Below, piece after piece: positions 12,336 to 62,489 of a stretch of 64,000 nt of DNA (its first letter is position 1; every line of letters begins with the position of its first letter). A model generated the notes under the pieces. It made no database searches. It was given only the letters and a program-made list of their open reading frames with translations, and was not told the DNA's origin. This DNA comes from Hemiscyllium ocellatum (Eukaryota), in the NCBI RefSeq assembly GCF_020745735.1, contig NC_083409.1:23952048-24016047 (forward strand), written 5' to 3'. A program made the position numbers and the translations under genes.

Positions 12336-12384
12336 TTGAGCAGAGTTAAAGCTGGGGGAGGTGGGAGCTCGGTGTCTCACTGTG

Positions 12385-13235: not shown

Positions 13236-13263
13236 GGTTTTTGGACGGCTCTGTATCACTGTG
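13236..13263 (-). other. V recombination signal sequence, 12-bp spacer
   Basis: Minus strand CACAGTG (13263-13257), 12-nt spacer ATACAGAGCCGT, nonamer CCAAAAACC (one mismatch to ACAAAAACC). Confidence 0.96.
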
Positions 13264-13909: not shown

Positions 13910-14944
13910 GGCATCAGGCAGAGAGAGCCACGTCAGTCCCTCACACTTCCTCTTCTGTCTCTCTCTGTCTCCCCATTCTCCCTCTCTCTCTCTGTCTGTC
14001 TATCCTAGAGAGACATTGATGTGAACTGTGCTGAATTAGACCATTTGTCCCATTGTGTCTGTGCTGGACAACAAAGACCTTGACAAACTAATCCCATTTT
14101 CCCGCTCTTGGTCCATAGGCCTGGAAGCTACAGCAACACAAATGTATATCTAAACACTGCTCCAATGTCACGAGAGTTTGTGACTCAAACAGCCTTTCAG
14201 GCAGTGAGTTCCAGACTCCCACCACCCTCTGGGTGAAAACACTTCTCCTCAACTCACCTCTCACTCTCTAAGTCGACTGGGCCTGAACTCACTTGAGTTC
14301 AGTAGGATAAGAGAGGATCAGATTGAAATGTATCAATTTCTAATAGGGCTGGGCAGGGAGGAGGTTTCCCCTGGTTGGGAATTCTGGAACCAGGGGACCC
14401 AGTCTTGGGGGATACAAAGTTGACCATTTAGGACTGAGATGAGGAAACATTTCTTCACTCAGAGGCTAGTCAACCTGTTGAACTCTGTACCTACGATCCT
14501 GACAGCTATGGAGGAGAGAGAATTGAATATGTTCAAGATTATTGTTCTGCCTTTTCACAGCATGAATGGAATGGGGAGAAAGCAGGAATATGGCTTTGAG
14601 ATGGAGGATCAGCCATGATCATACTGAATGACAGAGCAGAGTCAAAGGGCTGAGTGGGCTACTCCTGTTTCTGTGTTTCTGTGTTTCTGTTACCCTCAGT
14701 TTCTGACCCTAGTTTCTGACACCTTTATCCATGTAAAAAGTGCCTTCCTGTCGAATTTAAATGTGCCCCTCATAATCTTACAGTCCTCTGTCAGGTTTCC
14801 TCTCAACTTTCACTGCTCCAAGGAAAACAACCCCAGTCTTTCCAATCTTTCCTCATCACTCAGACCCTACAGCCCAGGCAGCATCCTGGGAAATCTCTGC
14901 ACCCTTCCGAGTACAACCACTTCCTTCCCACAATGTGGTGACCA

Positions 14945-15450
14945 GATCCTGTCTCTCTCTCTTTATCACTTTCTCTCTTTATCACTCCCATTCTGTCTCA
15001 CATCTGCCAACTCTTTCTCTCTATCTCTCTCTTTGGCACTCCTAATCTCTCCCATTCTCTCTCTCTCGCACTCTGTCCCATCATCACTCTCTGCAACTCA
15101 CTCACACTTTCTCACTCTGTCTCATAATCTCTATTTCTCCATCTCTCACTGTTTCCCTCACTTCCTCCCTTTCTTGTTTCTTATCTATTCTTTCTTCTTT
15201 CTCCATCCTTCCTCTCCACCTATCTGGTCTCTCTCTCTCTCTCTCTCTCTCCGTCCCCCTTAGTCACACTATCTCACACCCTATTTCTTTCCCCATTTCC
15301 CTCAACCTCACCATCTCTACTTCCATCTGCATCTCTCTCGCTCCCTGTACACATCTCACACTATCGCAGACACACCTCCCTCTCTCTCACACACACATGC
15401 TCTCCCTCCAACTCTCATTCTGTATCTCTTCCCTCTCTTTCCCACAGTAT
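14945..15450. repeat. CT-rich low-complexity tract (mirrored as GA-rich at ~45690-46375)
   Basis: Degenerate (CT)n; same junction to a CR1 fragment in both copies. Confidence 0.85.
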
Positions 15451-15459
15451 CCCAAGTGG

Positions 15460-15815
15460 TGACAGTTAATTGCAGGTCAAATCTCCCTCTGCTCTGGCCC
15501 ACTAATGGATGTTTGACTGGGACAGCACTACTATTATAGGACAAGCCAAACAGAGAACAGCCAGGGAATTCCTAGAGGCATGGCACTCATCCACAGATTC
15601 AATCAATAAGCACATCGACCTGGACCCAATATACCAGCCACTGCAGTGGACAGCTGGAACTGACAACCGGAAGCAGCAGAGACAAATCACTATAAATGCC
15701 GGAGGAAAGATCACAGAAGCGCTTCACAGGAGGCTCCCAAGCACTGAGGGTGTCACTTAGACAGGGGACGAAACGTCTGCAACACAAATTCCCAGGTCGG
15801 CGAACAGAACCACAA
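15460..15815 (+). mobile_element. Penelope-like element 3' fragment (second family)
   Basis: FDWDSTTIIGQAKQRTAREFLEAWHSSTDSINKHIDLDPIY, typical of the C-terminal part of the PLE GIY-YIG domain; absent from paralogous block B. Confidence 0.75.
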
Positions 15816-16244
15816 CAGTGGATATTAACTCTTAACCTCAGAAGCATGTCTTCTCCTGAAGTAAGGCCCCATTTCCCACATTGACCAGTCATTAGCCTGT
15901 CTCAAGATGATGGACAGATTCTTGTTAAATGAAGACAGTTTTGTGCTGTTGGCCTATTCTCACTGGGGACGGTTTGGACACAAACCTCATTCCATGAAGG
16001 CCCAGCAGAGAGAGGAGATCCTCAGGCCATCAGTGTGAGCCAGGGGGACAGGACAGGCTCTGACCCACTGACCCATCCTGTCCATTCACAACATGTTCCA
16101 ATCCCTTCCCCTCTCCTTCCCCTTCCACAGTCAGGCTCTGGGTCAAGGTGTTTTACTGGGATGAGGTCAGGGCCATCACACAATTACACCAGAAAGGAAC
16201 TGAGCCCCACACCCACCATGATATCCATGACCCACTGGGACTCT

Positions 16245-16595
16245 CCAATGGAGACCAGTATACATAGGCCTCCTTCCCACTGGATGTCCAGCAGACACCA
16301 GTATATATGGATCTCCATACCATTGGATCATCCAATACATATCAGTAAACATGGACCTCCATTACACTGGGCCCTTCAATAGACACCAGTAATCACAGGC
16401 CCCCAGCCCACTGGATGCTCCAATAGACTCCAGTAAACATGGGTCACCATCTCACAAGATACTTCAGTCGAGGCCAGTAAACTAGGGCCTTCTTTCCCCT
16501 GAACTTTACAATAGAGACCAGTAGCATGCATCCTGTTCCCACTGATCCTCCAATAGAGACCAGTAAACATGGGCTTTCATGCCACTGCACCCTTC
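16245..16595 (+). repeat. Degenerate ~44-bp minisatellite, 8 units (inverted copies ~43285-43430 and ~45020-45165)
   Basis: Consensus about CCAATAGAGACCAGTAAACATGGACCTCCTTCCCACTGGATGCT. Confidence 0.85.
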
Positions 16596-17184
16596 AGTAT
16601 CTGAGCTTCAAACCGCACATCCTCTCCATCACGTGGGCTTCTTTTCTATCTCCACAACATTGTCTCTCTGCACTACGTCAGCCCCTTGACCACAGAAACC
16701 CTTATTCCTGTTCATCCCACCTCCTAACTCCATAATCCCGATGTCCTCTCCTACCTTCCTTCCACCTGCTCCATAAAGCCCAACTGTCTGAAATGGAGTG
16801 GTCATTTCCCTGTCTCACACCAAGGAGGAGATGAACAGATATTTAATGAGTAATGGGTTAAAGGATGATGGAAAGTGGGCAGGAAAGTGGAGTTGAGTCT
16901 GAGATGGGATCAGCCATGATTGTATTAAATGGTGGAGTGGGCTCGAGGGGCTGAATTGCCTGCTCCTGCTCCTAGTTCTTATGTTCCTCCACCCTCTCCC
17001 GCATCCCTCTTACTGCAACTCTGTGAACCATCTTGGAATGTTTTGGATATTGAAGGTGCTGAATTAATGTGGGGACAGAATTGTACAGAGGCTGTGAAAG
17101 CTCCTGTAGTTGAATATCCTGCTGGCAGGCTTCAGCCTTCCACATACAGAATGGGAAAGTCGGGGAGGTCAGAATGTGATGTTG

Positions 17185-19345
17185 GGATCCTTGGCACTGT
17201 CCCCCAGCAATGTGGTTGACTCTCTATTGCCCTGTGAAATGGCCGAGCAAGGCTATCGGTTGTATCAATTGTGACGACCTCTCAACAAAGAAATGTAACC
17301 GGACGGACCACAGGCATCGATGCAGAGACAGTAAAGGTATTGACATACCTGCTGCATCCTCTTTACTGACATCTGGGGGCAAGTGCCAAATTCAGGAGAG
17401 CTGTCTCACAGACTGGTCAAGCAACAGCTTGGCACAGCCATACTCACAGAACCATACCTTACAGCAAATGTCCCAGACACCACCATCACTGTCCCTGCAT
17501 GTATCCTGTCCCACAGAAAGGCAAACACAGCAGAGCTGATGACACAGTGTCTACAGCCAGAAGGGAGTTACCCTGAGAGGCCTCAAAGTTGATTCCAGAC
17601 ACCATGAAGTCTCATGACCCCAGCCTAAACATGGGCAAGGAAACCTCCTGGTGATTACAAGATATTTTGCTCCCTCGGCTGATAAATCAGTCTCTCCTGG
17701 ATGTTGAACAGCATTTGGAGGAAGCACTGAGGGTGGTAACAGCACAGAATGTACTTTGGGTGGAGGGGTTTCAATGTCCACCACTGAGAGTGGCTTGGCA
17801 GCAGCATTACTGATCGAGTTGGTTGGTTCCTAATGGGTGTAGCTGAGGGACTGGCTCTGCAGCTGATGGTGAAGGAAACAAACAGATGGAAAAACGTACT
17901 TGACCCCATCCTCACCAATTTTGCGGCTGTGGATGCATCTGTCCTTGACAGTATTGGTAAGAGTGACCATAACACAGTCCTTGTAGAAACAAAGTTTAAC
18001 CTTCACATTGAGAATACCCTCCATTTTGGTGTGTGGTACTATCACCGTGCTAACTAGGACAGACTCCAAACAGATATTGCAACTCAAGGCAATGATCATG
18101 AATGGGGAGCATTGCCAATGAGTGCACAATCTCAACGCCTCATATACTGAAACAGTCCATGTTCGAATGCAGCAATATCTGCACAATATCCAATTTCATC
18201 TGAGAAGCAATATTTCCCATTGGTGCCTTGCAAATGCCAGCCAATGACCATCACCAATTAGAGACAATCTAGCCATCGTCCCTTGACAGTCAATGCTATT
18301 ACCATCACTGAATCCCCACTATCAACATTCTGAGGTATCATTGACCAGAAACTCAACTGGACTCACCACAGAAACACAGTGATTACATGAGCAGGTTAGA
18401 GGCGAGGAATACTGTATCGAGTAACTCACCTCCTGATTCCTCCAAAGCCTGTCAACCAAGTCAGGAATGTGATCGAATACTCCCCACTTGCCTGGATGGG
18501 TGCAGCTCCAACAATATTAATAGAATAATGGTGTTACAGAGTCATACAGCACAGAAACAAACCCTTAAGCCAAACTTCTATATTCTGACCAGGTTTTCTG
18601 AAGTGAACGAGTCTCATTTGCCTGCATTTGGCCCATATCCCTCGAATCCATTCCTGTCTATGTCTATCATATCCTATGTCATTCTTATCCACTCAGAAAG
18701 CTTGATACTATCCAGAGCCAAGCAGCCTCCTTGATTGGCATCACATCCACAAAGCATCCACTCCCACCACTGCTCCATAGCAGCAGCGTGTATTATTGAT
18801 AAGATGCTCAGCAGAAACTCACCAAAGATCCTCAGATAGCACCTTCCAAACCCATACGGGAAAATAGAAATTGCACAAAAAGCTCAGCAGATCTGGCAGC
18901 ATCTGTGGAGAGAAATCAGAGTTAACATTTCGGGTTGCGCACGAAGCATCATGTGACCCAGAAAGTCAACTCTGATGACTCTTCACAGATGCTGCCAGAC
19001 CTGCTGAGCTTTTCCAGCAATTTCTATTTTTGTCCCGGATTTACAGTATTTGCAGTCCTTATGGTTCCCTTCCAAACCCACGTCCACGTCCACTTAGAAC
19101 AAGAGCAGCAGATACATGGGAACACTGAGCTGCAAGTTCCCTTCGATAAAAGCTTAGCATTCTGACTTGGAAATGTATCACTATTCCTTCACTGTCGCTG
19201 GGTCAAAATGCTGGCATTCCCTCCCCAAGAGCATTGTGGGTCAACTTACAGCTTGTGGACGATAACAATTCCAGAAGGCAGCTTCCCACCACCTTCTCCA
19301 GGGTAACGAGGGACAGGGTAAAAAATGTTGGCCCAGCCGGTAAAG
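17185..19345 (+). mobile_element. Degenerate APE-RT non-LTR retrotransposon (CR1/L2 group, distinct family)
   Basis: GELSHRLVKQQ...ILTEPYL endonuclease start and RT/3' fragments; same family at ~41470-42000 and ~52380-54500. Confidence 0.7.
18855..19067. mobile_element. 213-bp fold-back element built from Penelope termini, 13-bp TSD
   Basis: Arms ~18861-18926 and ~18965-19031 are near-perfect inverted repeats; TSD CCTTCCAAACCCA at 18842-18854 and 19068-19080. Confidence 0.8.
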
Positions 19346-19699
19346 CCCCCTTCCCACGAATGAATACTTAAAACCAAATGAAGTGTTCCTCAGGAGGGGA
19401 GAGGGAATGTTCAGGATCCTGAACTCCATTTCCCAGCCCAGGCAGTTTGTCTCCCAATGAATGAATGAGATGCCAATTTGAAGCCCAGCTTCAGAGCAGT
19501 ATCACTCTGTGGACATGAGGTCTATAAGAGGGAATTGGAGATTGAGCTGAAAAGGAATGATTTGCTGAGTTATGGGGAGAGAGCAATGGGGCTAATTGAG
19601 TAATTCCAAGGCATGATGGGCTGAATGGACGCCTCTGTGCTGTCAGATTCCAGGGAGTGAGATGTCTCACAGTTTTCTCCTGTCTCAGTAACAAACGTC

Positions 19700-19884
19700 C
19701 AGCTGCTTTGAGCTCCTTCTTTCACTTCCTCTCTTGGTGAAGTTTCAACCTTGCAATCTGACAGTCTTTGCAGTTATTTTTTACACTGGGGCTTTCTGCT
19801 GTGGTTAGAATCTCTAATAATAAGTGTCCAATCAGTGACAATCACAGCAGCTAAGAGCAGTCAGGACTGAGGAGCCAGGCTCAC
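19700..19884 (-). promoter_or_regulatory. Conserved module M1, copy U (candidate lymphoid enhancer/promoter)
   Basis: GGAAGTGAAA 19729-19720, TGTGGTT, CCAATCAG 19828-19835, CAGCTG 19700-19705; 95-96% identical to the other two copies. Confidence 0.55.
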
Positions 19885-21276
19885 TGGGAAACACATTGGG
19901 AAGATCAAAGCTATCCTCTTCAGCACCTGGTACAAGCTCCATCCCTCTTCCTGAGCACTGTCTGCTGCTCAACCAGACTCTTTATAACTTTGGCCTTATC
20001 TTTGGGGCTGATTTGAGGCCCAACTCCTCCACATCACAAAGATCAGCCACTGAAAATCTCAGCCATTTTTTTGGGACTCCAAATGTGACTATTCCAATGT
20101 TATCCAGGCCCACGTCACAGCCACTGCCTTCTGTAAATATCAGCTCATCCCAAACTCTGCTATTGGTGTTCCAACTCACACCAAGTCCACCCCACACCCC
20201 CGTCCCTATCTTCCATCCCACCATGAACACCACAATCCACACTGACCGACATCAGCTCCTGGTCCAGCAACACCTTGATTTTCAAATTCTCATCCTTGTT
20301 CTTAAACCGCTCCCTGTCCTTCCATCCTCCCTATCTCTGTGACATCCTCCAAGCCACCTCAGTGTGGTCAGCAATCTTGGATATATGGCTCTCTGTTTCT
20401 TCATCCAAGTCATTGAGAAATATCGTGAAAAGATGAGGTCCCAGCACAGATCCCTGGCAACACCACTACTCACATCTGGCTCATTGGAACACACACAAAT
20501 TATCCTTCCTCTCTGTCCCTCACGGTGGGCATTTTAGAATGGCCAATTCACCTGACCTGCATATCTTTGCACCGTGGTAGGAAACCCACGCAGACGCAGG
20601 GAGAATGTATAAACTCTACACACATCCAAAGCTGGAATTGAACCTGGGCCCCTGGTGCTGTGAGGCAGCAGTGCTAACCACTGAGCCACTATATTGAACC
20701 TTCAATGTCTGAACCTTTGTAAATCCATGCTGATTCTCTCGGACCAGATCATATTTGTCCGTTATTCTGTCTCTAAAAACAGACTCAATCACTTCCTGAC
20801 AACAGACACTCAACGGAGATGTTCATTGTGAATGAGGTTACTAAACCACTAGCACTGACATGAGGGGCTGAAGAGCCTCCTTCTGAGCTGGAGCCTTCTC
20901 TGTCTCCTGGATGGAAATATTTTACAGATTAAAAATTAAAGACTAACATCATTTTTTTAAAAAACATTAAAAACTCCTCAAATAATTTCCACATACAGGG
21001 CCGGGCGATGTGTAGTAATTGTACGATGGGGAAGGTGGTGGAGCCCATTGTAGCTCAGAGTGACCACATCTACAGCAAGTGTTGGTTGCTCAAGGCACTC
21101 CAGCTCAGAGTTGATGAGCTGGAATCTGAGCTTCAAACACTGCGACACATCAGGGAGGGGGAGAGTTACCTGGACACTGTGTTTGGGGAGACAGTCACAC
21201 CTTGTAGGTTAAATACTTCAAATTATAGTCAGTGGTCAGGGACAGGAGGGTGTGACGATAAGTGAGCAGGTCGATG

Positions 21277-23914
21277 TCACCACGTCTTACCCCGCCCCTA
21301 CATCGATCTCCTTCCCCGCCCTTGCCCCTAACCCCGCCCCCACTCCCAGCTCCAGTCCCACACCAGGTGCCCGCTTCCAGCCTTGCCAGATCTTCACCAT
21401 CCCTCCAGACCTCCCCCTCTCTGAGGATGAAAGATCAGTCCTCAGCAGAGGCCTCACCTTCATTCCCCTACGCCCTCAGATTAATGAGTTCAACACATGG
21501 CGAGGTATTGAACAATTCTTCCGCCGCCTTCGCCTCCGTGCCTACTTTTACAACCAAGACTCCCGACCACCCTCTGACGACCCCTTCTCCCACCTCTAAC
21601 ACACCCCATCCACCTGGACACCCCGTGCTGGCCTCTTACCCACCCTCGATCTATTTATAGTCAACTGCCGCCGCGACATTAACCGACTCAATCTGTCCAC
21701 CCCTCTTACCCACTCCAACCTCTCACCCTCAGAACATGCAGCCCTCCACTCCCTCCGCTCCAACCCCAACCTCACCATCAAACCGGCAGACAAGGGAGGC
21801 GCGGTAGTAGTTTGGCACACTGACATTTATACCGCTGAGGCTAAACGCCAGCTCGCAGATGCCTCCTCCTATTGCCCCCTTGACCATGACCCCACCTCCC
21901 ACCACCAAACCATCATCTCCGAGACCATCCATAACCTCATCACCTCAGGGGATCTCCCATCCACCGCCTCCAACCTCATAGTCCCACAACCCCGCATTGC
22001 CTGTTTCTACCTCCTGCCCAAAATCCACAAACCTGACTGCCCCGGCCGACCCATTGTCTCAGCCTGCTCCTGCCCCACCAAACTCATCTCCGCGTACCTC
22101 GACACGGTCCTGTCCCCCTTAGTCCAAGAACTCCCCACCTACGTTCGGGACACCACCCACGCCCTCCACCTCCTCCAGGATTTTCGCTTCCCCGGTCCCC
22201 AACGCCTTATCTTCACGATGGACATCCAGTCCCTGTACACCTCCATCCCCCATCATGAAGGACTCAAAGCCCTCCGCTTCTTCCTTTCCCGCCGCACCAA
22301 TCAGTACCCTTCCACTGTCACCCTCCTTCGACTGACTGAACTGGTCCTCATCCTGAACAACTTCTCTTTCCAATCCTCCCACTTCCTCCAAACTAAAGGA
22401 GTTGCCATGGGCACCCACATGGGCCCCAGCTATGCCTGTCTCTTCGTAGGATATGTGGAACAGTCCATCTTCCGCAACTACACTGGCACCACACCCCACC
22501 TTTTCCTCCGCTACATCGATGACAGTATTGGCGCTGCCTCGTGCTCCCATGAGGAGGTTGAACAGTTCATCAACTTTACCAACACCTTCCATCCCGACCT
22601 CAAATTCACCTGGACTGTCTCAAACTCTTCCCTCCCCTTCCTAGACCTTTCCATTTCTATCTCGGGCGACCGAATCAACACAGACATCTACTATAAACCG
22701 ACTGACTCCCACAGCTACCTGGACTACACCTCCTCCCACCCTGCCCCCTGTAAAAACTCCATCCCAAATTCCCAATTCCTTTGTCTCCGCCTCATCTGCT
22801 CCCAGGAAGACCAGTTCCAATACTGTACAGCCCAGATGGCCTCCTCCTTCAAAGACCGCAGACTCCCCCCAGACGTGATCGACGATGCCCTCCACCGCAT
22901 CTCCTCCACTTCCCGCTCCTCCGCCCTTGAGCCCCGCCACCCAACCGCCACCAGGACAGAACCTCACTGGTTCTCACCTACCACCCCACCAACCTCCGTA
23001 TACAGCGTATCATCCGCCGTCATTTCCGCCATCTCGAAACGGACCCCACCACCAGGGATATATTTCCCTCCCCTCCCCTATCAGCGTTCCACAAAGACCA
23101 CTCCCTTCGTGACTCCCTCGTCAGGTCCACACCCCCCACCAACCCATCCTCCACTCCTGGCACCTTCCCCTGCAACTGCAGGAAATGCAAATCTTGCGCC
23201 CATACATCTTCCCTTACCTCTCTCCAAGGCCCCAAGGGATCCTTCCATATCCGCCACAAATTCACCTGCACTTCCACACACATCATCTATTGCATCCGCT
23301 GCACCCGATGTGGCCTCCTCTACATTGGGGAGACGGGCCGCCTACTTGCGGAACGCTTCAGGGAACACCTCTGGGACGCCCGGACCAACCAACCCAACCA
23401 CCCCGTGGCTCAACACTTTAACTCTCCCTCCCACTCCACCAAGGACATGCAGGTCCTTGGACTCCTCCATCGCCAGAACATACCAACACGACGATTGGAG
23501 GAAGAGCGCCTCATCTTCCACCTGGTAACCCTCCAGCCACAAGGGATGAACTCAGATTTCTCCAGTTTCCTCGTTTCCCCTCCCCCCACCTTGTCTCAGT
23601 CGATTCCCTCGAACTCAGCATCACCCTTCTAACCTGCAACTTTCTTCCTGACCTCTTCGCCCCCAGCCCACTCCGGCCTATCACCCTCACCTTGACCTCC
23701 TTGCACCTATCACATCTCCATCGCCCCTCCCCCAAGTCCCTCCTCCCTACCTTTTATCTTAGCCTGCTGGACACACTTTCCTCATTCCTGAAGAAGCGCT
23801 TTTGCCCAAAACGTCGAATTTCCTGTTCCTTGGATGCTGCCTGACCTGCTGCGCTTTAACCAGCAACACAGTTTCAGCTCTGATCTCCAGCATCTGCAGA
23901 CCTCACTTTTTACT
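21277..23914 (+). mobile_element. Penelope-like retroelement (RT + GIY-YIG), near intact, 12-bp TSD
   Basis: One frame from ~21280 with a TAA at 21597-21599; RT motifs KPADKG, MDIQSLYT, GVAMGT, RYIDD; 1-nt deletion near 22940; then IYCIRCTRCGLLYIGETGR (GIY-YIG); TSD AGCAGGTCGATG at 21265-21276 and 23915-23926; host is a CR1 ORF1 fragment. Confidence 0.93.
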
Positions 23915-24966
23915 AGCAGGTCGATGCAGCCTGAATGTAGTATTGCAGGAGTCTCAGCTCCTTGTCCAACAGGAATGAGGTACTTGCTCCCTGTGTCAAT
24001 GAGGGAAATGATTGTCGGGAGAATGGGCAAACGTAATGTGAGCATTTTGGTGATAGTGACCATAAAGTGTGACAAATCCTTAGGATCTGACATTCTCCAT
24101 CTGAGGGTAATAAAGGTAGCAACAGACCACATTGTAGACACTCTGACTATAATCTTTCAGAGTTCCCTGTATACAGGAGTCGTACCTCTGGCTTGGAAAT
24201 TTGCAAATGTCACTTCACATTTAACAAGGATGTGAGAGAAAATCCAAGGAATTACAGGTCACTAAGCCAGCGTTTGTAGTGTGGGAATTGCTGAAATCTA
24301 TAAGCAAGGATGGGCGTGACTGAAGACCTTGAAAATGGTCAGATATTCACGGAGAGTCAGCATGGATTCATGACAAGGTGGTGAAAAACCTCATTGAACT
24401 TTTTTGAAGAGGAGACTAACGTACTGGGCACAGTAATGTCTATGGATGTTGTTCATATGGACTTCCAAAAGGCATTTGATAGTGTCCTTTGTAAGAAAAC
24501 GTCAACTTCGATAGAAGTCCACAGAATTGAGGCTAAAATACTGACACATTGGAATGCTGGTTGAGTGACAGGTGACCGAAAATAGGGATAATGGGTAAGT
24601 GCTGAAATTGGCAGGATGTGACTAGTGGTGTCCAATAGAGATGTGTGCTCATACCTCAATTATTTACATTATTTATCAATGACTTGGATCATGGCATAGA
24701 AAGTCAGATATTTCGGTTTGGTAATGACACAAAGTTTGGCAGCATTGTAGACAGTGTCGATAGAGTCAGAGACTCATACAGCATTCATTCAGGGCAGACT
24801 TTAACAGAGTATAATTTATCTTTGATATACAACTCCTTGAACTCTATCTCTCTCTCTCTCGCTGTATTCCCCCTCCTCTCTCTACCTCAGCTGCATGGAT
24901 CTTACTCTGATTTTAATCCCTCTTTTCTCTCTCCAAGCTCCATCTCCCTCTCTCTCAAAGCTCCCA

Positions 24967-24997
<31 letters not shown>

Positions 24998-25065
24998 CTG
25001 AGCACCATCTCTCCCTCATTCTGAGCTGCTGGGAGTTCGATCTGAGCCAATGCCAGTGAATCCCA

Positions 25066-25345
25066 TGGAGAATAATGACGGGATATTTGGAGTGTGAGTT
25101 TGATGATGTAAATGTGAACCATTGCAGCAAAGACATTACAGATGGTTTGTACAGACTGCAAAGCCCAAACCAGAACATTGTGTCAATCAACACAGAACTA
25201 ATGTACACTTCAATAAAAACGGGTATTAATGTGATTTTCAGAGATGTGTCATTATTCTCATTACAAATGGCTGTTTCCCAGTGAAGGCCCATCCTGCTGA
25301 ATATTAGATACAGCTGAGCTTTGGAAAATATTGGGCAGTTGGAGT
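25066..25345 (+). repeat. Conserved module M2, copy U (paralogues 32215-32436 minus, 46590-46740 partial)
   Basis: Core 25066-25180 differs from the reverse complement of ~32320-32436 at 4 of ~116 nt; contains ATGTAAAT 25106-25113 and CAGATG 25139-25144. Confidence 0.6.
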
Positions 25346-25379
25346 ATAATGTGGGGGAGTGTGACCTTATTCACTTTCA

Positions 25380-26720: not shown

Positions 26721-27012
26721 GGTGGCACGGGGGCTCAGTGGTTAGCACTGCTACCTCACAGTGCCAAGGACCTGGGTTCAATTACATCCCCGGGTGACTG
26801 TCTGTCTGAAGTTTGCACATTCTCCCTGTGTCTGTGTGGGTTTCCTCTGGGTGCTCCAGTTTCCTCCCACAATCCAAAAGAAGTACAGGTGAGGTGAATT
26901 GGCCAAGCTAAATTGCCCATAGTGTTAGGTGTGTTAGTCAGAGGTAAATGTAGGGAAGGGCCTGGGTGGGTTACTGTTTGGAGGGCCAGTGTGGACTTGT
27001 TGGGCCAAAGGG
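26721..27012 (+). mobile_element. HE1-like V-SINE
   Basis: Full head, V-domain and tail; its head is mirrored at 28240-28282. Confidence 0.85.
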
Positions 27013-33452: not shown

Positions 33453-33487
<35 letters not shown>

Positions 33488-50610: not shown

Positions 50611-52379
50611 CGGGTCTCAGGCTACAGTCTGATATTGATCAGCTGCTAAATTGGGCAGAACAATGGCAGATGGAATTTAATCCTGATAATTACGAGGTGA
50701 TCCAATTTGGGAGGTCTGATAAGGGAGGGATATACAAAGTGCAAGGTATATGCCTTGGGTGTCCTTGTGCATGGATCACAGAGGGCTGATCTGCAGGTAC
50801 AACAAATAATGAGGAAGGCAAATGGAATTTTGTCCTTCATTGCAAAAGGGATTGAGTTTAAAAAGCAGAGAGGTTATGTTGCAGCTGTACAGGGTGCTGG
50901 TGAGGCCACACCTGGAGTTCTGCATGCAGTTTTGGTCTCCTTACTTGTGGAAGGGTGTACTGGCACACAAAGGGGTGCAGAGAAGGTTCACTAGGTTGAT
51001 TCTGGGGTTGAGAGGGTTGACCTGTGAGAGGAGAAACTGAGTCGACGGGGATACATTCATTGGAACTTAGAAGAATGAGGGTGGTGGGGGATCTTATAGA
51101 AACATATAAAATTATGAAGAGAATAGATAAGTCATAGGATGTTTCCACTGGTAGGTGAAACTAAAACAAAAGGGCAGAGCCTCAAAATTAGGGGGAAGGA
51201 AATTGAGAAGGAACTTCTTCACCCAGAGGGTCATAAATCTCTGGAATTCCTTGTCCAATGAAGTAGTCGATGCTACTTCAGTAAATATTTTCAAAACTAA
51301 GATTTTTTTTGAACAGTAAAGGAATTAAGAGATACAGTGAGATCGTGGGTAAGGGGAGCTGAGTCCATGAAAAGATCAGCCATGAATCTTATTGAATGGC
51401 AGAGCAGGCTTGAAGGGCCTGATGGCCTACTCCTGCTTCTAGTTCTTCTGTTCTTATGTTCCTTGGGAGTACTGGGGAACAAAGGGACCTTGGTGTACAA
51501 GTCCATCAATCCCGGAAGGTATCAGCACGGCTAGGTAGGGTGGTGAAGGAGGCATATGGGATGCTTGCCATCACTAGCCAGGGTATAGAATATAGGAGCA
51601 AGGAAGTCTCGTTGTTACTTTATAGAGCATTGATTAGGTCATATCTGAAATACTGTGTATCGTGCTGGTCATGACACTGTCAGAAGGTTGTGATTGGACT
51701 GGAGAGGGTGTAGAGGAGATTCACCAGGATGTTGCCTGTGATTGTCGGAGTGGGGAAAACATTCCCTGCTGAAGGAGTCGATTTCCTTCTGGGGAATGGT
51801 TTGTCAGGACTAAAGGCAGTAGCTTCCCCGTTAATTACAGAATGTCCAAAGGAGGTCCAAGAAACAGAACAATGACAGGAATAGGTTCCTGGTCTCTCTC
51901 CTTCGTGTGAGGTAACCAGGGCCATGGTTAAACAAAATCCATCAATAAGGGTTGATGTGACACCACAGCAAGCGAAAGGATCGCTGAAACTTTCTCAAAG
52001 GGTGAAGATAATCCAACTGGAGTGTTTGGTATGATGTCCCTAATTATAGCAGATCCAAGAAGCAGATCCTGAATGAACTAAATGAACACAGTCAGCTCAT
52101 ACTGAGGTCGAGGCAGAAGGAGTTTCAGAGTGCTATTACCTTCAGAATGGAGCACTGATTAGGAAGTGGAGACTCCCCCTCCTCATAGATCCCCAGAGAA
52201 AGAATGGTCGGTTAGACATTGGCTGGTGGTCCCACCCAGCTATCATAGGGAGATATTGTGGGGAGCACATCATATTTCCATGAGAGGACCATAGGGATTT
52301 GGAAAACACAGGCATCCAGAATCATGTGTTTTACTGAGCAAAAATTTTTTAAAATATGTGGTGCATTTTTAAAAAATGT

Positions 52380-54500
52380 GTCATACTTGACCTCATCCTC
52401 ACCAGTCCGCCAGCTGCAGATGCATCTGTCCTATACAGTATCAGTCAGAGTGAGCGTCGCACAGTCTTTTTGAAGGCCAACTCCTGCCTTCCACTGAGAA
52501 TAGCATCCATCATGTTGTGTGACACTATCACCACCCTAACTGGGACAGACTTACAACCGATGGGCGGCACGGTGGCACAGCAGTTAGCACTGCTGCCTCA
52601 CAGCGCCTGTAGACCTGGGTTCAATTCCCGACTCAGGCGACTGACTGTGTGGAGTTTGCACGTTCTCCCCGTGTCTGCGTGGGTTTCCTCCGGGTGCTCC
52701 GGTTTCCTCCCACAGTCCAAAGATGTGCGGGTCAGGTGAATTGGCCAAGCTAAATTGCCCGTAGTGTTAGGTAAGGGGTAAATGTAGGGGTATGGGTGGG
52801 TTGCGCTTCGGCGGGTCGGTGTGGACTTGTTGGGCCGAAGGGCCTGTTTCCACACTGTAAGTCTAATCTAATCTAAAAAAGCTCATGACTGGGCATCCAT
52901 GAGGCACAGTGGGCCATCAACAGCAGCAGAATTCTGCTCCAGCATAATCTGAAACATAATGGCCCAGCGTATCCCCCACTCAACCATTACCATCAAACCA
53001 GGGGACCAACAATGGAGAATTCAGGAGGGCATGCCAGGAACAGCACCATGCATGCATTAAGATGAGGTGTTAACCTGGCGAAGCCACTAAAGAGGGCTCC
53101 TTGCATACCAAACAGCATAAGCAGCAAATGATAGACAGAATTAAAGAATTCCACAACCAACAGATCAGGTCTAAGCTCTGCAGTCCTGAAACATCTTGTC
53201 ATGAGTGGTGTTGGATGATTAAACATCTCACTGGAGGAAGAGTCTCCACAAATATCCCCATCCTCAATGATGGAAGAGCCCAGCACAGCAGTGCAAAAGA
53301 TAAAGCTGAAGCTTTCGCAGCAATCTTCAACCAGAGGTACCAAGTGGATGATCCATCTTGGCCTCCTGCAGTGGTCTCCAGCATTACAGATAAAAGTCTT
53401 CAGCCAATTCGATTCACCCCACATGATGTCAACAAACGGTTCGAGGTCCTAACAAAACTGGAATCACTGGGTATCATTGGCAAACTCTTTGGTATTTAGA
53501 GCCATACCTGACACATAGGAAGATGGTCATGGTTGTTAGAGGTCAGTCATCTCAGCTCCTTGACATCTCTGGAGGAGCTCCTCAGGGTAGTCTCCTTCAC
53601 CCAACTATCTTCAGTTGCTTCATCAATGACCTTCCCTCCACAAGGTCAGAAGGGGTGATGTTCACTGATGATTGCACGATGTTCAGCACCATTTCCAACT
53701 CCTCAGAGAAGATCTGGATAATATCCAGGCTTGGGCTGACAAGTGATAAATAACTTTCATGCCATACAAATGCTAGACTCTGACTGTCACCAATAAGAGA
53801 CAATCTAACCAGTGTCCCTTGACATTCAGTGGTGTTACCATCAATGTGTCCCCCACTATCAACATCCTGGGAGTTGATAGCCAGCTGAAACTCACCAAAT
53901 AAACACAGTGGCTATAAAAGCAGGTCAGAGGCTAAGAATACTGCAGAAAGTACCTCACCTCTTGTCTCATGAAAGCCTGGCCACAAACTACAAGGCACAA
54001 GTCAGGAATGTAATGGAATACTCCCCACTTGCCTGGATGGGTGAAGCCCCCAACAACACTCAAGAAGCTGAACACCATCCAGGGCAAAGCAGCCGCTTGA
54101 TAGGCACAGCATCCACATGTAACCATGCCCTCTACCGCCAACATTCAGCAGCAGCAGTGTGCACTATCTACAAGATGCACTGCAGAAATTCACCAAAGAT
54201 CCTCAGACAGCACCTTCCAAACACAACCATTTCCATCTGGAAGGACAATGGTACCAGATATATGAGAACACCATTGCCTTCAAGTTCCCCTCCAAGCCAT
54301 CTTGACTTCAAAATGTGTTGTGTCCCTTCACTGTTGCGGGCTCCAGATCCTGAAATTCCCTCCCTAATGGTGTTGTCGGTCAACCCACAGAAGGTGTACT
54401 GCAGCAGTTCAAGAGCAGCTCAAGAGCCTTCTCAAGGGCAACTAGGGATGAGCAATAAATGCTGGCCAGCCAGCGATGCTCACATTCCACTAAATGAAGA
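52380..54500 (+). mobile_element. Same non-LTR family as 17185-19345, inserted into the Gypsy relic, with a nested SINE
   Basis: GAPQGSLLHPTIFSCFINDLP...FTDD RT motifs (ORF 53523) and ORF 53908. Confidence 0.75.
52562..52874 (+). mobile_element. HE1-like V-SINE, young
   Basis: tRNA-like head, V-domain GTGGAGTTTGCACGTTCTCCCCGTG, tail GGGCCGAAGGGCCTG shared with the CR1 3' end at ~31175. Confidence 0.93.
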
Positions 54501-56479
54501 TATTATAAAAAACCTTGTCAAGTTGTAGGTCAACCTCCACACATGATGAAAGCAGCATCCTTAATTCCTCTCCCAGTTTTTGAGGAAACATTCAGTCGTG
54601 TGGAGGTGTGTCCAGCACTGAGTGTAGCAGAAAGGGGATGAGAGCCAAAGAGAATTGGTCAATTCCCAAAGTGAACTTTCTCCTGTGAGGTGAACAAACT
54701 CAGAGGCATTAGAGAATTCAGACACTGCATTTTTGTATCTGGAGAAAGATTAACAGAGGGACAGAGGGAGATTGCTCAGAGAATACAAAGAAGTTTGTAT
54801 GAGGAGTGGTGGAGGCCTGTATTCGGTCCGTACTCGATGGAGTTTAGAAGGATGAGGGGGAATCTCAGTGAAACATACAGTAGACTGAGTGGCCTGGATA
54901 GAGTAGACATGGAGAAGATGTTTCCACTTGGCAGAGAGACTGGGACCTGAGGGCACAGCCTCAGAAGGGTCCATCCTTTGGAAGTGAGATGAGGAGGAGA
55001 TTCTTCATCCAAAGGGTGGTCAATCTGTGGATTGATCATTGCTGCAGAGTGCTGTGGAGGCCAAGTCATTGAGTGTATTTAAGACAGATAGCTAGGTTCT
55101 TGATTGGTAAACCAATCACAGGTAACAGAGAAGGCAGGAGAATGGGGTTGATAAACAAATCAACTATGATAGAATGGCAGAGTGGACTTGATGGGCTGAA
55201 TGGCCACATTCTGCACTGATACATGGTCTTTAAAAGATACACTTGCATGAGCCAGATTAATTGAACATGATGTGGAGGTAGATAATTCAGACCCAATAAA
55301 ACAAAACCCATTTTGGTTAAAACCAGAGAAACTGGCCAAAGTAACAAAGGAAGCTCAATGTTTATTTGAGAATCAATTGATTGATTTGTCAGAGTAATTG
55401 GAGTTCTCCCATGTTGGAATTGAGCAAATATCCCAATCATCTAAAACCCTGGATTTTTAAAAACCTTTTAAAAATAAAGAGACAGCTGGGCTGGGCTCTG
55501 GGAAAACACAGAGACACGGGGATGGCTGCCTGGAACCATTGTTCTGCCTGGAATTCCAGTTCACACCTCAACCCTTAAAGAGACACCAACCAGACCTCAT
55601 TCTCCAGACTGAACCTCACTTTTACACCTCAGCCGACTAACACAGACATTTTGGAACCTGTACAGATACTGGACATTCAACACAATCAATACTTACTCAC
55701 AGGGATATTGGGCGTTCAACAGCAGTCAAGATACATTCACAAATACTCTTAACTGTCAGGAAGTCAAGTGACCCCAAAGGGAACACCAGAAACACATTGG
55801 ACAACACAGATCTGAGGGGAGATAACGGTGCACACAGCCTGTATAACAGCCAGCCCTAATCTGAGGGTGAGCCTTTTCAACAACAAGTTTCTGCAGGAAC
55901 AGCTTCAGCAAGCCCCAACAAGCAGCTTCAGAACCAAGAACTACAGAGGCTGAACAGAGAAGCCGAATCCCGAAACCAAACCAAGAGCATCATCGCAACA
56001 AAGGACACCCGAGAGCAGGAACACCAACCAAACGCTATCTGAACAAGAGCTTCCAGAGACAGGCCTGTTCCAATCACATTCCCAGATTCCTTCGCCTCAG
56101 TCTTACCCCCCGCCATTTATCTCTCAGCTCCCAGTCCACAGGTCTTATTCTTGAGGAAGGGCTTATGCCCAAAACGTTGATTCTCCTGCTCCTCGGATGC
56201 TACCTGACCTGCTGTGCTTTTCCAGCACAACACTCTCAACCCTGATCTCCAGCATCTGCCGTCCTCACTTTCTCACAGACCTGTCCTGAGCCAAGAGAAC
56301 CGACAGCGAGAACCTCACCAACAGGACACAAATTAAACCTGTATTTTCCTCGGTGCTGAGCTGAAAACCCTGAGACCCCAAAGTTTCCCTCTGAGCTCGC
56401 AGGGAGGGGATGGTGGGTGGTGACAGTGCATTGGGACCCAAGGGTAGGGAGCCTGATTAAAGTTTGTGTGACTCAAACT

Positions 56480-57670
56480 GTTTTGCTTCGAATAGTAGAA
56501 AGTGAGGACTGCAGATGCTGCAGGTCAGAGTCGGAAAGTGAGGCGCTGGAAAAGCGCAGCAGGTCAGGCAGCATCCGGGGAGCAGGAGAATCGATGTTTT
56601 GGGCAGAGGTCCTTCATCAGGAATGTTGGGAAGGACGACTTGTGGAACATTTCTGGGACACATGCACCAAACAACCCCATCACCCTGTGGCCGGACACTT
56701 CAAATCCCCCTTCAACTCTGCCAAGGACATGCAAGTCCTGGGCCTCCTCCATTGCCAACTCCAAGCCACCTGAAATCTGATCAGATTAGATTAGATTGTC
56801 TACAGTATGGAAACAGGCCCTTCGTCCCAACATGTCCATACCAACCCTCCGAAGAGTAACCCACCCAGACTCATTCCCCTACCCTATATTTACCCCTGAC
56901 TAATGCACATAACACTATGAGCAATTTAGTATGGCCAATTCAGCTAACCTACACATTTTGATTAGATTAGGTTCCCAAGAAATTGGAAACAGGCCCTTCG
57001 ACCCAACCAGTTCGTACCGACTCTCCGAACATTAACCCACAGAGACCCATTTCCCTCTGACTAATGTACCTAACACTGCGGGAAATTTAGAATGGCCCAT
57101 TCACCTGAGCTGCACATCTTTGAACTGTGCACCCAGAGCACCCGAAGGAAACCCGGACATGGGGAGAACGTGCAACCTCCACACAGACAGTTGCCGAGGG
57201 CTGGAACCAAACCTGGGTCCCTAGGGCTGTGAGGCCGCAGTGCTAACCACTGAGCTCCTATGTCTGGAAGAAGCATGCCTCATTTTCCACCTTAGGAACC
57301 CCCAACCACACGGCATCAATGTTGTTTTCACTAGTTTAGTTATCTCCCCTCCCTCCATCCCCCAACGAATATCCAATCCTCCAACTAGACACCACCTCTT
57401 GAACCTTCCAAATCTATCCATCATCCATCCCACCTGTCTGCTTCACCATTCCTTCTGAACTATCACTATCACCTCCCCACCACCTGCATCTACCTATCCC
57501 CTTCCCAGCTACTTTCCTCCACCCCCTGCCCCACCCTCCTATTGATCTCTCAGTCCCCTTCCACTCCCCCAACCTTCCCGATGAAGAGCTGATGCCCGAA
57601 ACATCGATTCTCCTGTCCCTCAGATGCTGCCTGACCTGCTGTGCTTTTCCAGGGCCACATTTTTTTCACT
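56480..57670 (+). mobile_element. Penelope-like 3' remnant with inverted 5' terminal repeat, interrupted by two SINEs
   Basis: HPVAGHFKSPFNSAKDMQVLGLLHCQ matches the GIY-YIG tail of 21277-23914; inverted terminus ~56490-56620; SINEs ~56781-57256; terminus with CCGATGA...GAAAC at 57578-57605. Confidence 0.75.
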
Positions 57671-58239
57671 TTAGCTTCTAATAGTGTATAACCAGTGTTT
57701 AATTTGGTAGTGTATTTAATTTCTGTTCTCTGTATAATGGATACTGTTCATTTCACTGTTTATTACATTTACATTTGCTCCTGTATTATACTTACCTTTC
57801 CTATTGAATAAACCCAGAGATTCTTTTGCCCTGAAACATCCATCTACTACCCTCTTCATTTGTCATTTTTAAATAAATCCAGCAGCAGAACCAGGGATCT
57901 GGGCTTGATTCAAACCAACTAAAAATCAGCAAATTACTGATCATAAACTGGACAGGGTACCCTGATTGAACTGTAAGAGTAATTGGAGTTCTCTTGTAGT
58001 GTTGGTTCTGAAACTAATGTTTCAATTAGAATCTGTGTAGACAGTTGGAAAGTGAATGTAGTCACAAAGATGGATTTGTACCCTATTCCCAGGTCAGGAG
58101 ATTGCATTGATAGGGTATGTCTTGTGTCAGTCTTATCCAAAAGTGATTTGTTAAAAGTACTGCTGACAACAAGAGTAAAGGAAATTTCTGCATTTGCTGC
58201 ATTCTGAATCTTTGTATACAATGGAAAACTCAAATACAT

Positions 58240-60560
58240 TCGAAACATTTTGGGATGACAGGGTATAGACTGATAGCAGCACTGAAGAAAACTAGTTTTA
58301 TACGCGAAATGGTTTTGGAAAATTTATGGGATTAAATTCTGATAAATCCACAGGATCCAATAGTCTACACCTCAGATTACTTCAGGAAATGCCCAAAATG
58401 TTTGGAAACTTTGATGTTCAAGATTCTATGCATTCTGGAATAATTCCCACTGACTGGAGAGTTGCTAATGTAACATCACTATTTAAAATGGGAGAGAGAG
58501 AGAAAGTGGACAACTTAGACCAATCAGCCTGAAAATACTCAAGTCTATTATGAAGGATTTAATCACTGAAAGACAGTGACAGGATTAGACAGAGTCAGCA
58601 TGGTTTGTGGAAAGGGAAATCATGCTTAACAAATTGACTGGAATTGCTTGAGTCTGCAAAGAGCAAATTTGACAAGAAGGAGGCAATTGACATGGTATAT
58701 TTGAAACTTTTACAAGGTTTTTAATAAGTCCCACAGAAGAGAGCATAAAAAAATTAAGATTCATGGGACTGGGGGCAGTGTACTGACATGGATAAAGAAC
58801 TGGTTGGCAGGCAGGAAACAAAGAGTAAAAATAAACTGGAATTTTTCTGAAATGGTACCACAGGCCTGGATCCAGCTATTCACAATATTTGTTCATGGTT
58901 TAGATGAGGGAACTTAAGAGTAATATCTCCAAGTTTGCAGATGACACAAAGCTGGGTGGGAGGGGGAGCTGTGAGGAGGATGCAGAGATACCTCAGTGTG
59001 ATTTGGAGATGTTGAGTGATGGCAGATGAAATACAATGAAGTTAAATGTGAGGTTACCCAGTTTAGTAGCAAAAATTGGAAGCAGATTATTATCTGAATG
59101 GTGATAGATTGGGAATGGGGAGGTGCAATAAGACCTGGGTGCCTGTGTATGCCACAATGAAGATGAGAATGTGAGAGGTGAGGGGTGGGGGTGAGTGGAT
59201 GATGACTGAGTTTGTAGATGACATGAGGTTTGGCAGATGGTTGACAGTGAGGAAGAAGGTCTTAGGTTACAGGAGGATCTAACTGGATTGGTCAGATGGG
59301 CAGATCAGAGTCAGATGGAACTTACCCCTGGCAAATGAGAGGTGACAAATGAGAATTTTGGAAGATGGAACAGATGAAGAAGGCATTTATGAAGTCAGAT
59401 GTGATACTTACCTTTATCATTTCAGGTATAGATTAGAGGACCAAGGAAGAGATGTTGGAGAATACAGAACTTTGGTTAGGCCACAGCTGGAGTACTGTGT
59501 GCAGTTCTGGTCACCATGTGATCAGAAGGATGGAATTGTACTGGAGGGGGTGCAGAGGATAGTCACCAGAATGTTGCTTGGGATGAAACATTTCACCGAT
59601 GAAGAGAGGCTGGATAAACTTGGGTTGTTTTCTTTGAAGCAGAGAAGGTGGAAGGGGGACCTGATAGAGGTGTATAAGGGTATGAGGGGAATGGGCAGAA
59701 TGAAGAGAAAGTAGCTGTTCCCGTTGTACGGAGTTGGCACACATTCACTGTGAAAGATAGGAGCTTTAGAGGGGATTTGAGGAGCAGGTTTTTACTCAGA
59801 GGGTGGTGGGGGTCTGGTTTGCATTGCCTGGGATGGTAGTTGAGGTGGAAAATCTCACAATCTTTAAAAAATACTTGGATGAACACTTGAAATATCGTAA
59901 CATGTAAAGCTATGGCCCTTGTGTTGGAAAGTTGGATGAATGCAGGTTTAGTGTAGTTTGGCTGGTACAGGTTCAATGGGCCAAAGGGCCTCTTCTGTAT
60001 TGTGTGATTTTATGATTGTATTGTGTGCAGTTTTGGTTTCTTTATCTGAGGAAGAATGTTCTGGCTGTGGAGGGAGGACAATTAAGGTTTACCAGACTGA
60101 TTCCTGGGAGGACAGCACTTAGATCTGATGAGAAACTGGATCAGTTCGGATTATATTCACTAGAGGTTAGAAGATTGAAGGGAGTCACATTGAAATCTTT
60201 AAAATCCTAACAGGAAAAGGCAGGATGTTCCTGATGATTGGGGAGTCCAGAATCAGGGATTACAATTTAAGGATACGGGAAAGGCCATTTAGAGCTGAGA
60301 TAGAGAGATTTTTTTTTCATTCAGTGAGTGGGAAGCCTGTGGAAGTTTGTGTCACTGAAAGCAGTTGAACCCAAACCAATAAATGTTTTCCAGAAAAGCT
60401 ACACATATTTCTTCTAATGAAAGGTATCAAAGATGACGGGGAGAAAACAAGAACATGCGACTGAGTTGGATTATCAGCCATGATCATACTGAAAATTGGA
60501 ACAGGCTCGAAGGGCTGAATGGCCTACTCCTGCTCCTAGTTTCACTGTTTGAGAGACTGT
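58240..60560 (+). mobile_element. Degenerate CR1 fragments
   Basis: RT and 3' motifs (ORF 59349 RPQLEYCVQFWSP); ~59370-60590 is paralogous to ~38500-39750. Confidence 0.8.
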
Positions 60561-61151
60561 TCATCAACTTGGAAACATAATGAGTTAGAGAAAAGCATTT
60601 GCCTTTGGTCAGGAATTAATTTGGAGGAAGGAGACAGATTGGAGGGATAATGTATGTCTCCTCCAATGAGCAAGAGGTAAATAGTGGTGTCCCCAGGGAT
60701 CTGTGCTGGGACCTCAATATTTCATGATATTTCTCAATGACTTGGATGAAGAAACAGAGAGTCATCTGTCCAAGATTGCTGACCACACTGAGTGAGGCAG
60801 TTAGCAGGAGGTGACAGAGATAGGGAGGGTGGATGGACAAGGAGGGACTTCCGAACAAGGATGAGAATTTGAATATCGAGGTGTTGTTGGACCGGGAGCC
60901 AATGTCGCTCAGGGAGGACGGTGGGGGATTGGGATGGGACTTGGTGCAAGTTTGGATACGGGCAGCAGAGTTTGGGATGAGCTGAGGGTTACAGAGGGCA
61001 GTGGCTGTGATGTGGCCGAGGACAACATTAGAATGGTCATGTTTGGAGTCCCAAAGCAATGGCTGAGATTTTCAGTGAGTGATCTCTGTGCTGTGGAGGA
61101 TTTGGGGCTGAGATCAGCCTCAACGATGAGGCAAGGATTGAAAGGAATCTG

Positions 61152-61385
61152 ACACTAAATAAAAGATGAAAAAAGCTGTGGTTGTTGTAAATGAGGAACA
61201 AAAACTGAAATTGCTGGAAAGGCTCAGCAGGTCTGGCACCATCTGTGGAGAGAAAGCAGTTAGCATTTTGGGACAAGTGAACCTTCTTCAGAACTATTCT
61301 GAGAAAAGGTCACGCCACCCAAAATGTTAACGCTGATTTCTTTCCCCAGATGCAGCCAGACCTGCTGAGGTATTCTGTTTTTGCA
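61152..61385. mobile_element. Second fold-back Penelope-terminus element
   Basis: Inverted arms with CTGAAGA on the minus strand near 61283-61289; absent from paralogous blocks U and B. Confidence 0.7.
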
Positions 61386-61483
61386 AAGAGTTTAGTTGAG
61401 CAGCAGACAGTGCTCAGGGAGAGGGATGGAAGTTGTACTGGGAGCTGAAAAGGATGGTTGTGATCTTCCCAATGTGTTTCCCA

Positions 61484-61667
61484 GTGAGCCTGGCTCCTCA
61501 ATCCTGACTGCTCTTAGCTGCTGTGATTGTCACTGATTGGACACTTATTATTAGAGATTCTGACCACAGCAGAAAGCCCCAGTGTAAAAAATAACTGCAA
61601 AGACTGTCAGAGCACAAGGTTGAAACTTCACCCAGAGAGGAAGTGAAAGAAGGAGCTCGGAGCAGCT
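61484..61667 (+). promoter_or_regulatory. Conserved module M1, copy C
   Basis: CTGATTGG 61533-61540, GGAAGTGAAA 61639-61648, CAGCTG 61663-61668, CATCTG 61704-61709. Confidence 0.55.
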
Positions 61668-62489
61668 GGGTGTTTGTTACTGAGACGGGAGAAAAGTGTG
61701 AACCATCTGCACTCCCTGGAATCTGACAGCACATGAGAACATTAAAACCAGGAGCAGGAGCAGGCTATCTGGCCTCTTGGGTTGCTCTGCCATTCTGTAA
61801 GATCATGGCTCATCTTTTCATGGCCTCAGCTCCCCCTACCCACCTTTTCACCAAAACGCTTGATTCATTTACTGTTCAAAAAATTACCTGTCTTAGCTTT
61901 AAAACATTTACTGAGGAAACCTCAACCACTTCGCTGGGCAGGGAATTCCATAGATTCACCACCCTCTGGGTGAAGAAGTTCCTTCTCTATTCAGTCCTAA
62001 ATCTGCTCCCCCTAGCACACGAGGAGACCATTCAGCCCATCATGTCTGTGAGTGATCCAATTAATCCCACTGCCCCTCCCTCTCCCCATAACCCAGTAAA
62101 TCGTTCCTTTTCAGCTCAATCTCTAGTTGCCTCTTGTAGACCAGCAGAGCCTGTCCCTAACCTGGGCTCCAAATTGGCATCTCAGTCATTCACCGGGAGA
62201 CAAACTGCCTGGGCTGGGAAATGGAGCTCAGGACCCTGAACATTCTCTCTCCCCTCCTGAGGGACACTTGATGATGAGGGATAGTTCCAAGGAGCCCTAC
62301 AGTACACACTTCCCCATTCTGTGTGTAAAAGGCTGGAGCCTGCCAGCAGGATATTCAACTGCAGGAGCTATCATCTGTTTAATCAGTTCTGACCACCCCC
62401 ATTCTCCATAACCCTTCTAATCATTATTGATGGACAATCTCCTCCTTGTTGTGAGACAGGGAAGGGACTAGTCTGTTGCAGACAATTTG

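Follow-up and report, generated by a model that had tools for sequence, protein, structure and literature searches.

Alternating-orientation copies of a putative upstream flank beside a kappa-type light-chain minicluster in the shark Hemiscyllium ocellatum

The window analysed here, a gap-free stretch of 64 kb (64,000 nucleotides) from Hemiscyllium ocellatum (assembly GCF_020745735.1, contig NC_083409.1, positions 23,952,048 to 24,016,047), contains one immunoglobulin light-chain (IgL) minicluster on the minus strand, and the DNA upstream of it is built from long segments that repeat one another in alternating orientation. The minicluster has its variable (V) exon at 13.5 kb, its joining (J) segment at 12.8 kb and its constant exon at 2.0 kb, so that upstream means towards higher coordinates, as an earlier note on this DNA had assumed. 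The V-kappa exon (13265-13549, minus strand) is an open V domain with C23, W41 and YYC, and 3' of it lies a recombination signal sequence (RSS) with a 12-nucleotide spacer (13236-13263; CACAGTG-12-CCAAAAACC), the two together occupying 13236-13549. The J segment (12781-12819) carries the FGPGTKL motif and is preceded by a 23-spacer RSS (12821-12859; heptamer-23-nonamer, for which 0.01 chance matches are expected), both on the minus strand within 12781-12859. The C-kappa exon (1812-2123, minus strand) encodes an open Ig C1 domain of 104 amino acids; in the database, shark-like IgL constant domains match it best. Because its V domain is 86% identical in amino acids to one Chiloscyllium punctatum V and 65% identical to human IGKV3-11, the live gene can be assigned to a kappa-type cluster (V 12-RSS/J 23-RSS) from a near relative of the bamboo sharks. 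All the features of a shark kappa-type IgL minicluster were found: a V 12-RSS, a J 23-RSS, a single constant exon, one strand for all parts and a kappa-like V.

The J-C intron (2124-12780) is ~10.6 kb long and about half derived from long interspersed nuclear elements (LINEs), its CR1 copies lying mostly on the plus strand, that is, antisense to the gene; it also holds a (GGGTGAG)n array at 11407-11489. With this intron included, LINE-like or multi-copy sequence makes up ~47% of the window. Rfam and tRNA scans of the window returned no match.

Self-BLAST at two sensitivities, followed by chaining, divided the upstream DNA into three arms, a spacer and a stub. Arm U (14665-26762, minus strand) adjoins the live gene; arm B (28240-46582, plus strand) is an inverted copy of U inflated by transposable elements (TEs); and arm C (52136-64000, plus strand) is direct to B and inverted to U, and continues past the window end. 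Between U and B lies a spacer of 1,477 bp (26763-28239), centred at 27.5 kb and made up of an element resembling a short interspersed nuclear element (SINE; 26721-27016), block X (27017-27608, a CR1 3' end plus a piece of CR1 reverse transcriptase (RT)) and then unique DNA. Between B and C lies a 5.5-kb stub, D (46589-52135, plus strand), consisting of block t-t2, an old full-length CR1 that makes up most of it and a second copy of X, termed X'.

Eleven colinear inverted anchors link U 14772-26762 to B 46555-28240 (3,261 bp aligned, mean identity 80%). From the spacer outwards, they include U 26584-26762, which matches the reverse complement of B 28418-28240 (89.4%), and likewise U 26354-26588 with B 31451-31224 (89.5%), U 25261-25357 with B 32319-32221 (86%), U 25063-25181 with B 32437-32319 (96.6%), U 20705-20885 with B 35256-35076 (83%), U 19701-20517 with B 41372-40612 (77.5%), U 16474-16815 with B 43406-43057, U 15819-16248 with B 45627-45192 (85%) and U 14772-15513 with B 46555-45620 (72-73%). 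U 16755-26716 is joined to C 62516-52136 by 10 inverted anchors, among them U 19636-20517 with the reverse complement of C 61733-60633 (78-92%), and the palindrome-proximal block is present in C at 52136-52389 and 54514-54626. B and C share 9 direct anchors, including a 1.1-kb block private to these two arms (B 38582-39726, C 59465-60582; 76.5%).

The order and orientation of the U-B and U-C anchors exceed what chance placement yields. When subject position and orientation were re-dealt, the U x B inverted chain scored 2896 against 1405 +/- 225 in the permutations (maximum 2227, n = 1000), and the U x C inverted chain 2190 against 1339 +/- 246 (maximum 2216). The B x C direct chain taken alone is not significant (2292 against 1767 +/- 335), because large LINE-LINE matches dominate it; the relation of B to C follows instead from the U x B and U x C chains by transitivity, together with the private 1.1-kb block. 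No significant chain was obtained in TE-only control boxes that set the J-C intron against U, B or C. TE-like sequence accounts for 20% of anchor bases, compared with 47% overall, leaving ~80% that is not recognisably TE.

Insertions point the same way. The two innermost U-B anchors flank a young CR1 LINE that is private to B (28418-31224, plus strand), with open endonuclease (363 amino acids) and RT (543 amino acids) open reading frames (ORFs) that have Pfam matches; it is precisely inserted, ends in a (TTCTATG)3 tail, has intact empty sites in both U and C, and may come from a recently active family. All three arms carry a CR1 RT fragment at the equivalent position. In U, a 44-bp tandem array runs without interruption (16233-16600); in B, a LINE plus a SINE break it up. 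TE-like sequence amounts to 61% of B versus 30% of U, and B has reached 18.3 kb against 12 kb for U because it took up more insertions. U and B thus form an old degenerate palindrome, in which inverted colinearity beyond chance, non-TE anchors and private insertions with empty sites coincide. On all of this the earlier note is borne out. Its U, B and C anchors were all recovered by self-BLAST at nearly the same positions, as was its old palindrome with a ~1.5-kb spacer near 27.5 kb; its shared TE junctions are real, both as the CR1 fragment common to the three arms and as private insertions with empty sites; its colinear order, as opposed to scattered TE matches, exceeds all 1,000 permutations for U x B; and the repeats are segmental and alternate in orientation, U being inverted relative to both B and C.

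Two side observations concern the arms. The 44-bp repeat is a conserved landmark, found at 16233-16600, 43279-43420 and 45041-45141 and, in the bamboo-shark contig L001 described below, at 6211-6547. One pair, 17547-18031 and 41516-42009 (70.8%), is colinear in U and B yet lies in the same orientation where an inverted one is expected; related pieces in a C-private insert (52384-52551 and 53709-54056) speak for a TE family more than for a local inversion.

Comparison with a related shark assigns the arm to the gene. Four C. punctatum kappa V contigs were used, of which the longest (L001, BEZZ01005289.1) was retrieved through its V protein and three (L002-L004) are shorter; positions written with the prefix u are in U coordinates. 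Bases 1-5884 of L001 align to window 57934-64000 at 91-95% over ~5.6 kb in three pieces (1-1229, 1505-1644 and 1640-5884), the largest of 4,305 bp reaching the last base of the window, with 59294-59715 unmatched. The match spans two insertions private to C, a CR1 3'-end element (61731-61997) and a LINE from 62640, so L001 is the orthologue or nearest paralogue of C rather than of U or B. Past the point where the window ends, L001 continues through the 44-bp array (u16730-16224), a conserved non-coding island (island 2; u16138-15851, 89%) and a CT-rich tract with an old CR1 fragment (u15441-14665), and then enters a V region that shares 88% identity with the live V and has a 12-RSS, followed by a J with a 23-RSS. 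In L002-L004 the distal arm likewise lies directly upstream of V, and one of the four contigs carries 10 kb of arm. U is colinear with L001-L004 down to 14664 and then runs into the V region. The V exon of L001 (10001-10561) is open and has good RSSs, but Tyr replaces the first conserved Cys (C23); a pseudogene or a sequencing error may account for this.

On this comparison the arm is the canonical upstream flank of a kappa cluster, in keeping with the earlier note, which had proposed related sharks as a check on its reading of the arms as parts of cluster units. Because the arm stands directly upstream of V in all four contigs, U is simply the flank of the live cluster itself. C lacks the distal arm blocks seen in L001 only because the window ends; since L001, whose best match is C, goes on into V-J, this arm most likely flanks a neighbouring plus-oriented cluster, with a V expected ~4.1 kb beyond the end of the window. 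The live V and this neighbouring V would then most likely stand head to head, ~55 kb apart.

Arm B is the only orphan. Its homology to U and to L001 and L002 ends at 46555-46582, ~0.86 kb before the called start of the V gene in L001 and L002. In a four-way alignment, the breakpoint at which the truncated B end is joined to block t of D falls at 46583-46589, homology of B to L002 ending at 46582 and homology of D to U 25207 onward beginning at 46589; the junction is flush, without long homology. An end of U-B homology at a shared CR1 truncation was considered and rejected, since U stays colinear with the bamboo-shark flanks beyond this point and only B is cut.

The stub begins with block t-t2 (46589-47862), the reverse complement of B 32320-31455 (88-90%), the first 150 bp of which also match U 25207-25358 (85%). 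A nearly full-length old CR1 follows (47388-51459), then X' (51201-51749), a direct copy of X 27017-27608 (84.5%) with the same join of a CR1 3' end to CR1 RT. No arm anchor distal to ~u25190 was found in D, and the earlier note lists no anchor for it. Homology at first seemed to stop at the ends of block t-t2, as for an independently inserted TE; this origin was rejected, since in both B and D a CR1 3' fragment precedes a CR1 5' part, at 88-90% identity, the D copy being the more complete.

No trace of a second gene was found in the window. Searches with tblastn using the live V, J and C gave nothing outside the live genes (best E-values 0.2-0.4 or worse), word-7 blastn found no second copy of 12.5-14.0 kb or of 1.0-2.0 kb (depth 0), and an RSS pattern scan found only one match. 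With tblastn and word-7 blastn, 14.7-64 kb yielded no V, J, C, leader or RSS relic, and no J-C intron remnant was found beyond the live cluster. Because neutral arm DNA of equal age still aligns at 72-82%, the coding parts are absent rather than decayed. B, C and D thus carry no recognisable Ig relic, while B and C are colinear with U and with the bamboo-shark flanks and D is a proximal stub only.

Divergence gives a relative time scale. Kimura two-parameter (K2P) distances over neutral stretches are 0.27 for U-B, 0.20 for U-C, 0.23 for B-C and 0.083-0.087 for C-L001, so the three arms parted within a brief interval, ~2.5-3 times further back than the split between C and L001. Near the palindrome centre the picture changes: U-B identity is 89-97% in the inner 1.7 kb (89.6% in block p, 96.6% in block a) against 72-78% further out, and K2P falls to 0.11 in the proximal arm and ~0.035 in block a. 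This gradient fits arm-to-arm exchange near the centre, partly more recent than the C/L001 split. Within the centre, relationships are reticulate, in that each pair of arms shares a block absent from the third: q and r are common to U and C, a and t to U and B, and n and m to B and C, with t2 common to B and D. Single-event models for the two centres (one duplication, or one or two inversions) were tried and none fitted.

Taken together, the observations make it probable that the window holds one live cluster and three paralogous upstream flanks of head-to-head origin, of which U serves the live cluster, B is an orphan and C leads to a second cluster. The history would start from an ancestral head-to-head pair of clusters with a palindromic intergenic region. 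A segmental event would then have produced a second tandem copy of the unit formed by palindrome-centre stub, spacer element and right arm, copy 1 being X + B and copy 2 being D + X' + C. This event could have been a ~21-kb partial tandem duplication within the intergenic region, with no gene lost, or a deletion of two clusters lying between two pairs; either would leave the end-to-start junction at 46583-46589. Arm-specific insertions of CR1, SINE and other elements would later have enlarged the arms, B most of all, each arm would have lost a different block, and sequence exchange would have kept the palindrome centre and two non-coding islands far more alike than the rest. Comparison of X + B with D + X' + C as tandem copies finds the end-to-start junction in place and block t, X and the arm colinear; the interiors of the two centres differ (q-r-p versus t2-t3), and B and C are no closer to each other than U and C.

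Several points weigh against this history. B-C divergence is no smaller than U-C or U-B divergence, so the distances do not order the events. The central 5 kb fits no single duplication, and the CR1 that is contiguous in D corresponds to two oppositely oriented pieces in the U/B centre. The cluster past the window end is inferred from the contig of another species. Finally, the family reportedly has ~200 copies, and the closest relative of each arm may therefore lie elsewhere in the genome.

The strongest rival is the reading of the earlier note itself, an alternating array of four former units (U, B, D and C) that arose by inverted duplication and later lost V-J-C by birth-and-death. In its concrete form, two head-to-head pairs stood in tandem and one deletion took the clusters of B and D together with most of D's arm. 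Much of the evidence above suits it: orientation does alternate, the cluster unit includes the arm, B ends 0.86 kb before the V start as the end of a deletion would, the blocks of D lie in U orientation, and X' stands ahead of C just as X stands ahead of B. Against this, no coding relic, RSS, leader or J-C intron remnant remains anywhere; U and very probably C flank existing clusters, so that at most B and D can have been orphaned; D has no distal arm anchor; and a partial duplication without gene loss yields the same junction. Birth-and-death deletion and partial duplication without a cluster do leave an identical B junction, and as a whole the four-unit array seems unlikely. The alternating colinear segmental DNA of a kappa unit therefore stands, as one orphan (B), one stub (D) and two flanks (U and C) in place of an array of decayed cluster units. 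For D, the arrow assigned to a fourth unit holds, its pieces being in U orientation with X' before C as X is before B, and its status as a unit does not, for want of any distal arm anchor. Loss of coding segments is not supported as a description of all four pieces, since there is no relic and U and very probably C flank extant clusters.

An assembly artefact, in which haplotypes or paralogues were collapsed or mis-joined to give the palindrome and the third copy, is very improbable: repeat-rich multigene arrays are prone to mis-assembly and the B/D junction is flush, but divergence between the copies is 10-28%, with many private insertions besides, which is far above haplotype differences, the window has no gaps, and C is colinear over 6 kb with the independent assembly of another species. 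Least credible of all, and largely refuted, is the idea that the matches reflect only dispersed TEs or a single large composite mobile element in several copies, without any segmental relation, for although 47% of the region is LINE-like or multi-copy and several dot-plot matches are plain CR1-CR1 or SINE-SINE (the apparent B-C anchor 32718-33015/56963-57255 is only 73% identical, while the SINE copies at 44671 and 52563 match its B member at 92%), the order and orientation of the 11 anchors lie beyond every permutation and those of the TE-only boxes do not, 80% of anchor bases are not TE-like, private insertions have empty sites, and in another shark four contigs have the arm immediately upstream of V.

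Returning to three paralogous flanks around one live cluster, two islands within the arms are more conserved than their surroundings. The first, a 283-bp module at U 19701-19983, recurs at B 41090-41372 and C 61385-61667 with ~93% identity in all three pairs; it is 94-95% identical to L001, compared with 77-82% for the adjacent 480 bp, and has a near-invariant core of ~185 bp with an ETS/IRF-type composite motif. Island 2 (U 15851-16138; B copy 45303-45592, U-B 90.8%) shows ~90% identity between U, B and L001 and 85-89% in L002-L004, with neighbours at 69-79%; it has neither an ORF nor codon periodicity, and stops occur in every frame. Neither island is coding. ORFs at U 19896-20342 and C 60616-61059 were also rejected as a conserved coding region, since they lie in different frames with unrelated translations and are chance ORFs. 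The islands stay at 90-95% in the arms, gene-less B included, and in the bamboo-shark contig, with surroundings at 70-80%. They might be cis-regulatory elements of kappa miniclusters, the orphan B having been retained as a shared or 'shadow' enhancer block for two flanking head-to-head clusters, an idea that we regard as doubtful, more so than the four-unit array. C-L001 divergence inside the module, at 0.066, is near the neutral 0.085. Homogenisation by conversion explains the islands at least as well as purifying selection.

Other repeats in the window deserve mention. The SINE-like element, ~310 bp long, occurs in six copies (5453-5770, 26721-27016, 32718-33022, 44671-44982, 52563-52875 and 56963-57255) and has no tRNA or Rfam match; two copies, 44671-44982 and 52561-52873, are 97.4% identical, so that the family must have been active recently. 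A second LINE family is represented by a 436-amino-acid ORF with an RT domain at 22218-23528, in a GC-rich (55%) stretch; in L001 (7711-8347), L002 (246-884) and L003 (259-899), a fragment from that family is found immediately upstream of island 2.

If the proposed history is right, the amplified unit includes at least 8-12 kb of upstream flank, adjacent clusters are arranged head to head about a degenerate palindrome, and orphan flanks can survive over long periods. The locus also supplies two conserved non-coding islands as regulatory candidates and a dated ladder of events, with an arm triplication ~2.5-3 times older than the split of the bamboo-shark copy and some of the exchange near the centre younger than that split. 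The accepted birth-and-death picture of Ig gene evolution is unchanged.

To our knowledge, the long-range organisation of shark light-chain miniclusters has been little described. Minicluster organisation itself is established in cartilaginous fishes, with copy numbers that vary widely (PMC12227049). As in the shark IgL miniclusters of the kappa type (type III), each cassette here has one V, one J and one C, and the live cluster shares the V 12-RSS, the J 23-RSS and the kappa-like V. The J-C intron differs in its ~10.6 kb, roughly half of it LINE, and the new feature is the long-range layout, with a conserved upstream arm of at least 8-12 kb that occurs in three copies for at most two clusters. 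In human Y-chromosome palindromes, gene conversion runs from arm to arm. The present palindrome likewise has two inverted arms around a short spacer and its highest identity next to that spacer; unlike those of the Y chromosome, its arms are old and degenerate rather than near-identical, and conversion is read from the identity gradient. The proximal and distal copies of human IGK form a large inverted duplication. IgL clusters in opposing orientation are also known in a teleost, the zebrafish (PMC3014032). Both resemble the shark locus in having inverted segmental copies of Ig gene-bearing DNA and V-J-C neighbours of opposite orientation, whereas the inverted repeat described here is an intergenic flank, 72-90% identical, heavily remodelled by CR1 and SINE insertions and with one geneless arm. 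Birth-and-death evolution of immunoglobulin multigene families has been reviewed (PMC3308330), and repeated duplication of a unit, loss of some copies and patchy homogenisation are common to such families and to this locus; the usual pseudogenes with recognisable exons are absent here, the coding part of B being wholly missing or never having existed. Inverted duplication and birth-and-death in Ig loci are thus already known, and the locus is a well-resolved new example of them in a shark kappa array.

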